Assembly (NCBI GenBank): GCA_048013815.1
Contig: CM106585.1
Coordinates: 2,294,001-2,358,000 of the forward strand
Length of the DNA stretch: 64,000 nt
Direction: 5' to 3'
DNA from: Setoptus koraiensis
Taxonomy: Eukaryota; Animalia; Arthropoda
The notes below the pieces were generated by a model. It did no database searches. It saw only the letters and a list, made by a program, of their open reading frames with translations, and had not been told where the DNA came from. The position numbers were made by a program, and so were the translations under genes. Positions 8,901 through 46,391 of this stretch are shown in pieces (positions within the stretch are counted from its first letter, which is position 1; each line of letters starts with the position of its first letter).

Positions 8901-10987
8901 AGCCTCAGTGAGTTGATTTAACGTGACGCTGCTCAGTTCGGGAGCACAAATCGACAGGCTGCACGTGTACATGTTAGATGTAAAACAATCAAAGTCTAAA
9001 TTTCCGTTGGCTGCATGCAAATCTAAATCAAGTGCAAACGGCGAACGGAAGAATATAAATACTACAGTTAGTGAAGATAGAACAGAAAAAAGAGTTGTAA
9101 TATCAACTATACAAAGAGACATTTCACATTTAAAATGAGAAAATTGCTTGCTTGCTCAGAAAGTACCATCTTTTGTAAACTATAGTCTCCGTTGCAGATC
9201 ATTGTTGGCAAGATCGTCAAGTCTAAATCGTCAAGTCTAAATAATGAGTCTAGTTTGAAACAATATTGACATACAACTAACAGTGCTATCTATGAATCAG
9301 TTTCATGCTGTCGACATTTCCACAATAGCGGTGAAATAGATCTACTCGCAGAGGCTGCCATCGTCGTCAATCAATTCAATAGAAAGAATAGATTTCGCGC
9401 ATTTAATTTCTCTTCATTCAAACTGTGAATTCACTTACAATCAAAACGTCAGACATCATTTCAAACTACTGCACATCGACTTAGTGAAAGGCATCAAGAG
9501 CTTGCATGGAAATGTGTTGTTTAGTTAGGCATCGATTCAACAAAAATTACCTCAGTTAGCATCTATGAGTTTTTGTCTATTTCAATAAGCTGTCAAATAT
9601 ATACTATGACACCAAGAAATACACCTCAACCTACCACAACCAGATTATCGAACACTGTTCATTCTTTTGAAAAAATCTAGTGAGATTATTTCATCTAATA
9701 TTTTGCAAGTGGTTTATATTCACTGAATTATTAATCACTAGAACTCTTTTAATTGCTACGACACAATCAAGGGGGATCGGTTCGATTGACGCTCAATTCA
9801 AACTGATTTGCTATATACACTTGATCATCGATCTGAACGCTTTCATTAACATTGTTTCATGACATGAGCAGTAGATTTGCCTCAATATATCACTCGCAAA
9901 AAACAACAAATTATTCCGACATATTCTGTGATGCTTGTACCTTTTGTCTTTATCCAATTACTTTATAATATGAATAGAAATCCTTCACCTTAGTTTCTTA
10001 ATCAAGACTCAATCGATATTGATTCTCTCTTAAGACTATTTACGGCTTATAGAGAAATCTAAGACCATTCAACGACGACGAAACGTCAGTGTAATATCAT
10101 CTATCTTCGACCGATAAAAAACCTTCAATAATTTATTTATTCAATTGAAGTGAAACCAAGTTTGCTTCGCAAGTTTGGTCTTTGAATATCGTTAGCGTAA
10201 ACAGTCGCTGTCTCATCACACAACAAACTGAATGGACAAGTTATTCCGCTATAAATAAAATCAACTACATTTAGTGTATTGAGTCAACGTGAAATAACTA
10301 TCATCATCGATTAGAATAGCATTCGAAGGCAAACTACTCGACATCACTATGTTCAATAGTTTACAGTAAGAATTTGTCAGATCATCTTCTCGAGCAATCA
10401 ACACCTTCGAGAGACATATAAGTTAACTTTATGAAGTCACCGTACTGACACTCAAACTATTATAGTCATATTGCGCAAATACCTTCGCATATAGCTGTCG
10501 ACTTGTGAGCTGGGAAATCGCAATGATAGCAGCAGATTTTCACCTCTGGAATCAAGCAAGATCAATAATTTTTTGTTACATATTGAATGATTGATAATTT
10601 ATTGATGCACCCATTCGTAATGAACCACTTCAATACTGCTTTATCAAAGAAATTTACTGAACTCTCTGCAAAATGACTATCCATTGTAAGTCAACTATTA
10701 AAGATATAGAAAGAATTGGTGAAATATAAATAGATACTCAAGATTAACTGCTATTATAAGGCCTTCCTGCAGAGTTGAAAGCAATATGTTGGCACAGTTG
10801 AAAAAAAATTCTACATTATTGGCCAAAATAGGTTTCGTACTCGCGCTTACTTTCTTGTATCACAATATTATGCTACTGCATGTTGATAAGGTAAGGATAT
10901 CATTATATTTTTAGGAAATGGATAAAGTCGATCAATAAATCAACGTTCAATAACAACTTGTTCGTCCCAAACGTTTCTGATTCGTAG

Positions 10988-13900
10988 AAACTCCATGATA
11001 GCTTACAAGAGTTCAAGCTGGAATCTAACAAAATTGCGGGAAGAACAACGATCAACGAGAAGTCCACATTTCCCGTATGGAACAATAGGAGCAAAAGGCA
11101 GACAGAATCTAGAAATGACGATGACCGTTTCATTTCAGACGACATGATAGATGGTGGATCAGCGTCCGCCGCAAGCCAATGCATGTGCCCTCCAGGTATG
11201 TACTATGAATTAATTCAGTGAAACTTCAATATACCTGTCCTCGAGTTAAAAGAATGAACACAATAACTTCAAAATGTTTGCCAAACAAATTCAAATGAAT
11301 GTTTTATTCTTGTTACGGTAAAAATTAGGTCCGCCTGGACCCCCAGGCCCACCAGGACACCGAGGCCCTAGAGGTCTTCAGGTAAGTTTCGAATGCAAAG
11401 TTTAATCTTTTATCAACGCGAGATCTCTCGTTACCTACATGCTGATTATTTACAAAATGGATCATTGCAAATCACAAAAAAAACTATCAGGGTGTAAAGG
11501 GAGCTAGAGGTGGCCCGGTGGAAATTCATTATCCGTCTCCAACAACAGGAAAAGTAAGTTATGCACGCTATCACTTCAAAAGCAACTGGCATAAAACAAC
11601 AAGAAGTTTACTAATAATAATTATTCGATTTACCAACATTTTTCTTGTAGACTATCCATACCAGATCTGTGACAACAAGATTGCAAGGTGACCTTGGAAA
11701 TGCCGAGATCATAGCCATAAAAGTGAGTACCGCTTCTATATTTAATGACGTTTTAATACTGTGATCTGTTTTAAACTTCAACCTATGCTAGTCATCCACT
11801 AAAACGATGTCTCACTTCACTCGAATGTTAATTTGATTAAATGTCTTCTCTCGTCGTAATCAACTTTCTGTTCCCGTAAACCGCCGAAATACTCTCTTCT
11901 ACTATAATGGATTCTCATCCAAATATGAATATCAATGCAATCTACCAAGGCTCTGGCTAATGTTGGAGCTACACTGTCTCCTGGTGATGTGCTACTCCTC
12001 AAAGTAAGAGCATAGGACTTTGCTTGGATCTTTTTTCTATGCAAAAAACAGCCAATATACTAATTGCATATTCAATCTGTCTTTTTGATCCAGGGAGAAC
12101 CGGGCCTTAGAGGAGAAAGAGGGGAACCAGGCCAACCAGGCGCTCCTGGACCAATTGGTCCACCTGGTAAGGACGGTATACCTGGAGCGAAGGGAGATAA
12201 GGGAGATAGAGGTCTCACTACGTCTATCGATGGAAATCCATTTCCCACAGGATTTGTTGAAGGACCAGCAGTAAGTAAAAATACAGAGCTACACTATTTC
12301 GAAATTGATACAAACATAGAAGTTCACTCATTGAGTAATAATTTTTGTTTTGATTTCACAGGGACCTCCAGGTAAATCATTCGTCATGAAACGTAGCCTT
12401 TCAATTTTTTTCATCAGAATTTGAAGCTCAATTTGTTTTTTTTTTCAACACTGATACTTTTAGGACCCCCGGGTCTGCCAGGACCTCAAGGAAGAAAGGT
12501 AAGGTTCTAAGTTCGATTCTAAGTAGTAAACACATTTTTGTAAAACAAAATATATTTTTTCATCTTTGTTTATCGTTCAATTATGCTTGTGTTCATAATT
12601 TAACATAATTTTAGTCAAGTTTACTCTACGTAACCTAGCAGTTACTATCTGATCACAATGTATGCTATCCTACTAATTGAGGTTGTCTACTTATAAATCC
12701 CTTCATAAAACAAAATTCGGTTCTCTTATTTATAGGGCGATCTCGGTGAAAGAGGTCCTCCAGGTGAAAAGGGTGACAAAGGAGACAGGGGTGATAGGGG
12801 GAAACGCGGCAAAAGGGTAATGTACCGTCAGTTTTAAGTCTCACAGATGTCTCAAGCTCAGTCCGACCTACTTTAGATTTCTATCACTGCCACTGGAATA
12901 GATGAGCGTAGGACTCATGCTCTCAGATGAATCGATTCAGCAATGGGCAAAAACTGCACATCAATATAAGTTATAAGTTGTGATTTGTAAGTTATCTGTG
13001 ACCTCCCCAACCTAGTCTTTCTAACATATTGACATCCAGCCCTTACTATCGCTTTCATGTTGTTTAACTCGATCATGATTGTCTTCACTTTATCTCAGGA
13101 TTAATCTGGACCCGCAAGGATTGTAAGTATGAATGAACTCACGCCAATCAACATTTGGATGCGCAATAGAAGATTGATTAGAGGATATTGAGTTTGTGAA
13201 TACAGGGCAAACCTAGAGAAAAAAGAGAATCTGGCATTCGGAGAGAAAGAGGCCCAATGGGTCCAATGGGACCACCAGGCTAGATAGGGCCTCCAGGTGG
13301 ACCCTGATTGAGAGGCCCCAAAGGTGATATCGGACTGCCAGGAACAATTGCCGGATTCAGAATAAAATTGTGATGTCAAGAAAGTAGTTATATCCTGGAA
13401 TTTGTTTCATTCAGCGTAGCCTATACCTGTTCCTTATGATTTTGTTTTTATTAGGGAGCTGAATCTTCGGCTCCTATCATGTTGGCACCATAAGCCGAAA
13501 CAATCAGATGATATTCAATCTGATCAGCCAACTCCTGCACCGAATGGTTATTGTCCTAGTCCGCCAGGCCCGCTTGGATCACCGAGTTAATCTATTGCTG
13601 GACCTCCAGGTCAGAACGGAGATAAAGGCGACATAGGACAGAGAGGATTTTCTTCACAGGTATGTCGGTCTATATATTCTCAACAGAGCAGATTGCAAAA
13701 TTTACCTACGAAATAATACTAATGAAGATTCTATTTTCTAACAAAATGTCATTCGCTTGCTAAACTAGATTAAAATAACTAATCACAAGAAACTCAGGGA
13801 TTAATAATGATAAGCGAAGCGAAAGAGGGGTGGAGAAGAAATGTTGATGAAAGCTAACCGACGATTCATGAGATCAATTCAATCTCAGATCGAACCGAGT

Positions 13901-14475
13901 GTAACAGGAAATAGAATCAATATCGATCGAACTCCCTATAATATCTCACCCTTATTCTAACTGAATTAAATTTCTAATATAATGTAACTTTTCACGAATG
14001 AGCTTTCGACACTGTGTAGATAATATCTCGCGCTCAGTTTATAATTTACAACTCAATAGTTTACTAATCTGCATCAACCTTTTCCCCATTACAAAAACCT
14101 TGATTTAAAAACAGGGTCCGAAAGGGCCTATCGGTCCTATGGTAAGGGCATCATTTTAATTTAACAACTCTTTCAAACTGCAAGACTAGAAAGAAAACTT
14201 TCTAATTGTCAACTTCCAATGACTTTTCAGGGCAAGATTGGTAAAAAAGGAGACAAAGGAAATCCTGGGGCGCCTGGCTTGGATGCTGTTGCCTGTCCTA
14301 TTGGCCCCGATGGGCTACCTGTTCCCGGATGTGCGTGGAAATCAGTAAGTTGAAATATCAGTTCAAATGGTTATACGATTGTTAAATTATATTCTTTCTA
14401 ATGAGACTAGCGTATTTCTTTGTTCAAATGAATCATCTTTTGCTACTATAGAATAACGCCGTGGCACCAATATGA
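10988..14475 (+). CDS. Membrane-associated collagen with interrupted triple helices (MACIT; collagen XIII/XXIII/XXV family), 5' exon(s) not located
   Basis: In-frame GT-AG exons: 10988-11195, 11329-11381, 11491-11553, 11651-11722, (11950-12003 possible alternative), 12094-12270, 12362-12371, 12464-12498, 12736-12816, 14115-14141, 14231-14344, 14452-14475 (last exon tentative). They encode a furin-type RSKR site, CMCPPGPPG, Gly-X-Y runs and the family C-terminus [21 protein letters not shown] (compare GLDAPCPLGxDGLPxxGCW of COL13/25). The transmembrane exon was not found. Confidence 0.9.
13206..13659 (+). pseudogene. Two decayed collagen exons (pseudo-exons) inside the collagen gene
   Basis: 13206-~13358 reads [44 protein letters not shown]. 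13455-13659 contains stops, a frameshift and [34 protein letters not shown] acceptors at 13204-05 and 13453-54 and a GTATGT donor at 13660 are retained. Confidence 0.85.
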
Positions 14476-14864: not shown

Positions 14865-16496
14865 CTAGTCTAGTTCCTTATCGGACAAAGGGAAGTTTTG
14901 CTTATCTTTTACAATGACAAACTCATCTTGGACAGTTCCATCCTTGTCATCGGATATTTGTTGAAATGTGAGCCTGGTCATAGTGGCATTCATACGAGTA
15001 AATCCGTAATCTGATATACGGGCGACAGAGCCTGTCTTGGGATCATTGCTAAACTTATCAATGTTTTCATCACACCCAGCCGAACCTGTGACTATGTGTA
15101 CAGGGGCACGAGAGTTGTGGTATGGGTTGCTTTTATCAATGGTGCCATTGTAAACTTTACCGTCATAAATAGGTAAGAAACGCTCGTAACTGTGTTGATG
15201 CGACCATATCAAAACATCGGCGCCAAATTTGTAGAACATTTTTTCTAGTCCATAAGCATTTAATACCGGAAGGCCCTTTCTCAGGATGTTCGAGTCTTTA
15301 GTGCAATCGTCTCCATCATTGCTAGAGCAGTACATAGGTCTGTGGCCTAGTACGATAATCCAGGGTCTCTTTGCTCGCTGCTCTGGTGATGAAGCCCTGC
15401 GTAGGTCTTCTTCCAACCAATAGTATTGATTGTGCAATGGTACCATGCCTGTTTGTTCTAAAAAGTAGTAAAACTCTGTTGAGAAGACTACAAAATGAAC
15501 AGGGCCCAAGTTGAATGAATAGTAGAAATTGTTTTTGGAACCATTTTCAAACCCTCCGCTATTGACCATAGTGAATCTGTGATTGTAGTGCGAGAAATTT
15601 TGTGCGATCTCATGATTACCTACAGACGTTTGATACGGTACTCTGGCTGCGATAGGCTCTATTTTTCTCATAAATTCATCACCATAAGCTCCATTGTTGG
15701 TATTGAGATCATACGCGAAATCGCCATTGTGAAAGATAGCGTCATATGAAGACTTGTCGACGTCCTTGATCAGTCTTGGTATAGATTGGCCATTGACCAA
15801 ACCAAGGTCTCCATATATTGCCATTCTTAGAACTCGATCGTTGGGCCAATCATCAGTTAATGACTTAAATGTAAAGATTTTGCTAGGTATATTTGTTTTC
15901 GATCCGTTTTTGAAAACTTTGGACTCCACTCTATACCAATAGACTTTATTTGGTACAAGATTAGTCAAGGCTGCTCGATAAGAATAAAGCTTACGTTTAG
16001 CAACCTTGGAAGTATTGTTGACCGTTCTTAAAGGTTCGATGGATTCAAAAGTGGAACTTGAACCCTTGACAACAAACTGTTTCATTGGTGTACGCTGTCT
16101 TCCGAAATGATAAGGTGAATGAGGACTTATATGCTCTTTAACCATGCCGTAGATAACAATTGAATCATTAACAAGTTCCATGGTGGACCATGTAACGTAC
16201 ATTTCTTTTGAGTTTGAGCCCAACGAAATATGAAGTTGTTCGGGCATGTAAGCCACATGATCGTAGTCTATTCCATCTAAGCCGACGTTGATTTTCTCAA
16301 TTGTGTAATAATATCTATGTGTAGTAGATTGGGCGAACAATATTAGAATCAATATCATGAATAGAAAGTATAAAAAATTAGCTCTTCTTGGGAGCTCCTC
16401 CTCGTATGGAGGCGGAGGTGTCGAATTGGGTCCATCAAAGATAACCACAGGTGATCCGGGAGGGATTTTAATTGATTTGTTGTTCAATGGTTGCAT
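14865..16496 (-). CDS. ACP7: Purple acid phosphatase-like protein (acid phosphatase type 7), intronless, 543 aa
   Basis: Metallophosphoesterase motifs GDLG, GDFAY, GNHE, HRPMY and SHQHSYER; PEQLHIS at the start of the FN3-like N-domain; C-terminal PVHIVTGSAGC. Confidence 0.95.
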   Translation of the reverse strand: MQPLNNKSIKIPPGSPVVIFDGPNSTPPPPYEEELPRRANFLYFLFMILILILFAQSTTHRYYYTIEKINVGLDGIDYDHVAYMPEQLHISLGSNSKEMYVTWSTMELVNDSIVIYGMVKEHISPHSPYHFGRQRTPMKQFVVKGSSSTFESIEPLRTVNNTSKVAKRKLYSYRAALTNLVPNKVYWYRVESKVFKNGSKTNIPSKIFTFKSLTDDWPNDRVLRMAIYGDLGLVNGQSIPRLIKDVDKSSYDAIFHNGDFAYDLNTNNGAYGDEFMRKIEPIAARVPYQTSVGNHEIAQNFSHYNHRFTMVNSGGFENGSKNNFYYSFNLGPVHFVVFSTEFYYFLEQTGMVPLHNQYYWLEEDLRRASSPEQRAKRPWIIVLGHRPMYCSSNDGDDCTKDSNILRKGLPVLNAYGLEKMFYKFGADVLIWSHQHSYERFLPIYDGKVYNGTIDKSNPYHNSRAPVHIVTGSAGCDENIDKFSNDPKTGSVARISDYGFTRMNATMTRLTFQQISDDKDGTVQDEFVIVKDKQNFPLSDKELD

Positions 16497-18280: not shown

Positions 18281-18464
18281 ATCTAAGATCTTCGATAGAT
18301 ACTTGGACTCTTAGAAACACTCACTCACCGTGGATACTCACTCTACGCTCTGAGCTCTCTCCACAAATTCCGTCCATCATTACAGTAACGCAATGACGTC
18401 ATCTCAGCCATCAGGCATGAACGCTGGCGTACACACAGGGAAAACGTAACCACGGTTTACTTAT

Positions 18465-19963
<1,499 letters not shown>

Positions 19964-43116: not shown

Positions 43117-46391
<3,275 letters not shown>

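Follow-up and report, generated by a model that had tools for sequence, protein, structure and literature searches.

The window analysed here is a stretch of 64,000 nucleotides from the genome of Setoptus koraiensis (assembly GCA_048013815.1, contig CM106585.1, positions 2,294,001 to 2,358,000). On its forward (+) strand, at 10786-14475, lies a 13-exon gene with GT-AG introns that encodes a 340-residue collagen of a gall mite, likely a transmembrane collagen of the MACIT type. The intron between exons 10 and 11 contains three exon-like segments, here named psiA, psiB, and psiC, which carry stop codons and broken Gly codons. We consider it probable that these relics are former exons, still in situ, that were lost from the product of an otherwise live gene through a splice joining exon 10 to exon 11 in register.

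The 13 exons of the gene, all on the + strand, sum to 1023 nt, that is, 340 codons plus a stop. A script check of the phases placed every one of them in frame and found no internal stop, as the preliminary description of this locus had claimed when it called the flanking exons clean. Exon 1 (10786-10890) provides the ATG, a short N-terminus, and, as a putative anchor, a hydrophobic segment, LLAKIGFVLALTFLYHNIMLL, and ends at the donor AAG/GTAAGG. Exon 2 (10988-11195), which is in frame, bounded by GT-AG introns, and without a match in Pfam, encodes a non-collagenous region next to the membrane, in which an RSKR furin-type motif and the residues CMCPPG occur, followed by the beginning of the first collagen stretch. 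This stretch and a non-collagenous region occupy exons 3-6 (11329-11381, 11491-11553, 11651-11722, and 11950-12003), which are joined by GT-AG introns with continuous phase. Splice sites were scored with a position-weight matrix built from the gene's own 12 introns; the acceptor of exon 6 is poor (score -4.1) and follows an intron of 227 nt, and this exon (54 nt, phase 0 to phase 0) could be a candidate for a frame-keeping skip.

Exon 7 (12094-12270) contains 13 Gly-X-Y triplets and then a non-collagenous linker, and it matches the Pfam Collagen domain (PF01391) with 34.4 bits against a cut-off of 27.2; Collagen matches were obtained for exons 10 and 12 as well. Exons 8-10 (12362-12371, 12464-12498, and 12736-12816) encode 14 Gly-X-Y triplets without a break and end in GKRGKR at phase 0, with AGG/GTAATG as the donor of exon 10. 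Exon 11 (14115-14141) is only 27 nt long and encodes GPKGPIGPM. The end of the collagen region and a conserved C-terminal motif lie in exon 12 (14231-14344), and the 24 nt of exon 13 (14452-14475) supply the last seven codons, NNAVAPI, and the stop. Altogether, the live exons comprise 44 triplets, arranged in three collagen stretches (9, 13, and 22 triplets) that non-collagenous segments separate, and each of the 44 Gly positions is intact.

MACIT collagens are anchored as type II membrane proteins, have helices with interruptions and a furin site close to the membrane, and share a very conserved C-terminal motif in which two Cys occur and which ends in WKP, WCS, or WRP in invertebrates (PMC4678570). 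In the mite protein, 10 N-terminal residues precede a hydrophobic segment some 21 residues long, which reaches a Kyte-Doolittle maximum of 1.76 over 19 residues; this segment of exon 1 may be a cleaved signal peptide instead of an anchor. The RSKR sequence, a match to a furin-type motif only, is located about 33 residues past the anchor. The ectodomain has interrupted triple-helix regions in the form of its three collagen stretches. The C-terminus contains two Cys and WKS and then seven more residues, and in the related mite described below the two-Cys part shows 100% conservation.

The intron of the productive mRNA (12817-14114) is 1298 nt long and exceeds the other 11 introns of the gene, which measure 89-237 nt, by a factor of 5 to 14. 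If the relics within it are counted as exons, the remaining intron pieces measure 282, 84, 84, and 455 nt, which is normal for this gene. The first relic, psiA (13099-13122), is a probable mini-exon of 24 nt that reads GAT TAA TCT GGA CCC GCA AGG ATT, i.e., Asp and a stop followed by SGPARI. It is followed by psiB (13206-13369; 164 nt), which contains 16 Gly-X-Y triplets and then AGFRIKL, and by psiC (13455-13659; 205 nt), in which a Cys-bearing non-collagenous linker precedes a short collagen tail. Together the relics amount to 393 nt, or 131 codons, and their phases (0, 0, 2, 0) fit exon 10 and exon 11. The frameshift that had been assumed within them is not needed, as psiB ends in phase 2 and psiC completes the codon.

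Four in-frame stops are present in the 131 relic codons and none in the 340 live codons: TAA at 13102 in psiA, TAG at 13281 and TGA at 13305 in psiB, and TAA at 13588 in psiC. The collagen periodicity that had been noticed in the relics is borne out in psiB, where Gly is kept at 12 of the 16 Gly-X-Y positions; the best Gly periodicity in 20,000 shuffles of its bases was 8 of 16. The other four positions read AGA (13215, 13224, and 13242) and TGA (13305), each one substitution away from GGA. Two further codons of psiA, GAT at 13099 and AGG at 13117, are candidates for former Gly codons by the same one-step reasoning. Thus, four to six Gly codons appear broken in the relics, where 21 of 27 are intact as compared with 44 of 44 in the live exons. 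All codons singled out in the preliminary description (three AGA, two AGT, TGA, TAG, and TAA) were found at their coordinates, and its reading of the five AGA/AGT codons as former Gly holds for the three AGA codons. It probably does not hold for AGT at 13558 and 13585, which lie within a non-collagenous stretch without a clear Gly register, correspond to Ala (GCT) and Ser (AGT) in the relative, and are not convincing as former Gly codons.

With regard to the splice sites of the relics, the acceptors of psiC (11.6), psiA (8.3), and psiB (5.5) rank first, second, and fourth within the 1298-nt interval. The donor of psiC is the best in the interval (9.3), and that of psiA (GTAAGT, 5.7) is the third-best. 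The donor of psiB, ATT/GTGATG, is degraded (-0.1), and all 12 live donors score higher (3.7-11.8). The second-best acceptor, the third-best donor, and a fitting phase make a probable exon of psiA, which had been proposed as no more than a possible mini-exon. A shorter live sub-exon was also sought in the relics, and no stop-free, in-phase, collagen-type segment between AG and GT with an acceptable acceptor was found.

A related mite is represented by the Logan contig SRR33593474_1010103 (L006/L009; 9241 bp), whose dS (synonymous divergence) from the window is about 0.6-0.9. The neighbouring phosphatase gene, whose orthologue on the Logan contig is 91% identical, served as the anchor of synteny. 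From 13902 onward, contig and window align with an identity of about 80%, and a global alignment reaches back to about 13477. The contig begins inside psiC and carries the 3′ 58 codons of this relic and then exons 11, 12, and 13, and the order of psiC, exons 11-13, and phosphatase is the same as in the window. The relative also settles the end of the gene, which had been placed at a TGA at 14350 reached by reading on from exon 12. This TGA is TCA in the relative, where the donor TCA/GTAAGT and the 24-nt last exon are conserved. Exon 13 was therefore placed at 14452-14475, since the relative keeps this donor and the seven-codon last exon and not the TGA.

Selection was assessed pairwise by the Nei-Gojobori method, with psiA, psiB, and exons 1-10 lying outside the contig of the relative; this is the per-exon comparison of nonsynonymous and synonymous divergence (dN/dS, omega) that had been proposed as a check, and it separates live exons from relic. 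Exons 11-13 differ by 1 nonsynonymous and 21 synonymous changes (dN 0.008, dS 0.87, omega 0.01). The proteins encoded by exons 11 and 12 are identical in the two mites, with 4 and 14 synonymous differences, respectively, and exon 13 reads NNAVAPI and a stop in the window and NNAMAPI and a stop in the relative. The aligned part of psiC shows dN of 0.39, dS of 0.77, and omega of 0.5 (0.64 in the linker and 0.30 in the collagen tail), as well as a 9-nt indel. The phosphatase, used as a control, shows dN of 0.042, dS of 0.57, and omega of 0.075. Nucleotide identity is 0.79-0.88 in live exons, 88% in the phosphatase, 0.66-0.76 in psiC, and 0.58-0.64 in introns.

The TAA at 13588 of the window corresponds to AAA in the relative, whose part of psiC has an open frame and keeps all five tail Gly codons, the last codons RGFSSQ, and the donor. 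The relative has GAA (Glu) opposite GGA at 13600, the first Gly of the collagen tail in the window's psiC. These features suggest that the common ancestor had a functional psiC and that the relative perhaps still has one. The same 174 nt of the relative are also open out of frame (in two of the three frames), and openness alone is weak evidence.

The duration of constraint on exons 11-13 can be bounded with a Poisson calculation. If 10% of the divergence had been unconstrained, about 10 nonsynonymous changes would be expected in these exons, and the probability of finding one or none would be 0.0003; the bound obtained is that they were neutral for at most about 5% of the divergence. Judged by the density of their lesions, the relics seem to have drifted neutrally by roughly 0.1-0.2 substitutions per site; in the same time, exons 11-13 would have gained some 16-28 nonsynonymous changes if unconstrained.

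Other sources of relatives were also searched. A word search with exon 7 returned generic collagens only, as did the ESM Atlas in the form of generic collagen clusters, and a HMMER search of a whole library of 1.84 billion proteins with exon 2 gave no match. A word search with the open frame of exon 12 returned only the SRR33593474 relative, looking up the relative's open reading frame of exon 12 by exact match led to the same contig only, and two metagenome scans, one by alignment of exon 12 and one with a degenerate C-terminal pattern, gave nothing. No full-length relative came from these single-exon searches. In the more distant phosphatase orthologues (L007, L008, L010, L011, and L012), the neighbouring genes are EF-hand, TUTase, and ANAPC4 and not collagen.

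The contrast between omega of 0.01 in exons 11-13 and omega of 0.5, an indel, and TAA in place of AAA in psiC indicates a live gene whose relics have been freed of constraint, and the position of psiC, which is the same in the relative, indicates that the relics are in-situ exons. These two results support the core of the preliminary description, namely decayed exons within a live gene. Since exons 11-13 appear to have been translated throughout the decay of the relics, the relics would have been left out of the mRNA. The junction of exons 10 and 11 (12816 to 14115) runs from phase 0 to phase 0 at Gly codon boundaries and yields GKRGKR/GPKGPIGPM/GKIGKK; that it keeps both the frame and the Gly-X-Y register had been noted before and was confirmed by a script check. 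The sequence thus points to 12816-14115 as the only productive splice. We infer that the relics are skipped in the mRNA, that this skipping is constitutive, and that it preceded their decay.

A probable course of events, and the most economical one, is as follows. The ancestral gene would have had 16 exons and encoded about 471 residues, from which psiA, psiB, and psiC (131 of 471 residues, 28%) would have been dropped in the lineage of this genome. With them would have gone some 19 Gly-X-Y triplets, a non-collagenous hinge that bears Cys, and another short helix. To begin with, the three exons may have been alternative cassette exons, a usual arrangement in MACIT genes; the long isoform may then have been no longer needed, or the psiB donor may have been lost, after which the unused exons would have drifted and acquired stops and broken Gly codons. 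The present mRNA would join the donor at 12816/12817 to the acceptor at 14114/14115, turning two collagen stretches into one uninterrupted helix, and its 340-residue product would keep the anchor, the furin-type site, and the C-terminal Cys motif.

Several points weigh against this interpretation. The skipping is a prediction from the genomic sequence. Given their strong splice sites and short introns, psiA and psiC would be expected to be included to some extent, and three acceptors and two donors would have to be bypassed; some unproductive inclusion of the relics is possible. A search for a long-range inverted repeat able to loop out the relics gave matches at chance level only. In psiB, the three AGA codons might conceivably have stood for Arg from the start, within a charged interruption. 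The selection test is pairwise and does not tell the two lineages apart, and the comparative support is confined to exons 11-13 and the 3′ portion of psiC. Rescue of the relics by adenosine-to-inosine editing, by which AGA would be read as GGA and the stops as TGG, was considered separately and set aside: Trp would still stand at the Gly position of 13305, and the codon of the relative at TAA 13588 is AAA and not a G-bearing codon.

The most serious rival, though an unlikely one, is that the relics are still spliced into many transcripts as poison cassettes, leading to nonsense-mediated decay or to a protein truncated after exon 10, beside the skipped form. The strongest acceptors of the interval belong to psiA and psiC (8.3 and 11.6, with donors of 5.7 and 9.3), and the donor and the last codons (RGFSSQ) of psiC are conserved in the relative, as this explanation would have it. 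Like poison exons, the relics are stop-bearing exon-like segments with good splice sites in a live gene. Known poison exons, however, are highly conserved and typically among the most conserved elements of their genes, whereas psiC is less conserved than the live exons (66-76% identity vs 79-88%), falls below and not above the neighbouring coding exons in this respect, and has omega of 0.5 and an indel; the donor of psiB is degraded as well. A truncated protein as the sole product is excluded by the omega of 0.01 in exons 11-13. It is much less probable still that the lesions are errors of assembly or consensus and that the exons are intact in the animal. Artefacts do occur elsewhere in the window, where poly-A and poly-C lie beside 500-N gaps, but about ten substitutions would have to fall within 393 nt, with none in the 1023 nt of the flanking exons or the 1632 nt of the phosphatase. 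Errors of long reads are mostly indels, and there are no indels among the lesions. Moreover, beyond the stop, ordinary nonsynonymous differences between psiC and its counterpart in the relative are numerous and spread along the exon.

Two other explanations appear very improbable to about the same degree. The whole gene could be a pseudogene whose clean exons have not yet been hit, and such a reading is helped by the fact that, among the live exons, comparative support is confined to exons 11-13. Nevertheless, the 340 live codons contain 0 stops and the 131 relic codons 4, Gly is broken at 0 of 44 positions in the former and at 6 of 27 in the latter, and the 1 nonsynonymous and 21 synonymous changes of exons 11-13 contrast with the 16-28 nonsynonymous changes expected under equal decay. 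Alternatively, the relics could be an inserted fragment of another collagen gene, given that collagen-like sequence is common and that psiA and psiB are identified by internal evidence. In the two-contig, 48.7-Mb assembly, however, the relic DNA, the psiC peptide, exon 2, and exon 12 were each found only once, and therefore neither a paralogue nor a donor for an inserted fragment is apparent. Moreover, psiC occupies the same place and has the same donor in the relative, and the phases and total length of the relics match exon 10 and exon 11 exactly.

Former exons dropped from a live gene have parallels in known systems. The MACIT genes of human, mouse, and C. elegans show alternative skipping of central exons but invariably retain the anchor, the furin site, and the C-terminal peptide (PMC4678570). 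The mite gene resembles these cases, collagen XIII and C. elegans col-99 among them, in the in-frame loss of central exons, which may be collagenous, non-collagenous, or mixed (PMC4678570), and its putative anchor, furin-type motif, and C-terminal motif would correspond to the three elements that the MACIT isoforms retain. The difference is that the skipped exons of MACIT genes are intact and used in some isoforms, whereas those of the mite contain stops, and the short form would be the sole productive one.

A second parallel is exon 3 of TNNI3, which has been pseudoexonized in shrews and moles; in some moles the splice sites are still intact (bioRxiv 10.1101/2023.05.19.541292). Omega is 0.04-0.07 in the rest of that gene and 0.87 in the relic, and alternative splicing was proposed as the precursor (bioRxiv 10.1101/2023.05.19.541292). 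In both cases, a former exon with inactivating mutations decays within an intron of a strongly selected gene, with omega of 0.87 vs 0.04-0.07 there and 0.5 vs 0.01 here. Unlike TNNI3, the mite gene has lost three consecutive exons (131 codons, 28%), the protein is a collagen of a miniaturised mite, and the case is built on genomic sequence and one relative. The mite relics show the features of pseudoexons: an ancestral exon (seen for psiC through the relative and for psiA and psiB through periodicity, splice sites, and phases), inactivating mutations, purifying selection on exons 11-13, and relaxed selection on psiC in the pairwise comparison. Pseudoexonization inside a selected gene is thus already documented, and the mite gene is a further, clear case and not an unprecedented one.

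Tail to tail with the collagen gene and 0.4 kb from it lies an intronless gene for a purple acid phosphatase (14865-16496, - strand; 543 residues) with the Pfam domains Pur_ac_phosph_N, Metallophos, and Metallophos_C. Its named matches include Aceria tosichella, with 49% identity, and its closest matches are Logan assemblies. Many Logan assemblies that resemble gall mites contain copies of the phosphatase that are 49-57% identical and lie in different neighbourhoods. Elsewhere in the window, about 920 nt of poly-A with scattered C (18450-19870) run into a 500-N gap (19371-19870), and about 950 nt of poly-C (44180-45630) follow another (44180-44679). These poly-A and poly-C tracts at gap edges look like assembly artefacts rather than biology.

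The collagen gene provides a natural example of how a modular protein built from repeats can lose a quarter of its length without a deletion. Collagen exons start and end on Gly-X-Y boundaries, and exon skipping therefore keeps both the reading frame and the register of the helix. The gene appears to be at an intermediate and datable stage, in which the relics can still be recognised, most of their splice sites are intact, and strong selection acts on the flanking exons. In a MACIT-type collagen, the central helix and the hinge would accordingly be dispensable, and the anchor, the furin site, and the C-terminal Cys motif indispensable. It is a speculative suggestion that pseudoexonization is a recurrent route of protein shrinking in gall mites, in which splicing would first silence the exons and the relics would persist as unusually long introns of an otherwise streamlined genome; in a variant of this idea, the relics, with the best splice sites of the interval, would be a stop-bearing cassette that tunes collagen output. 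For gall mites, outlier-long introns in otherwise compact genomes may mark recently discarded exons.

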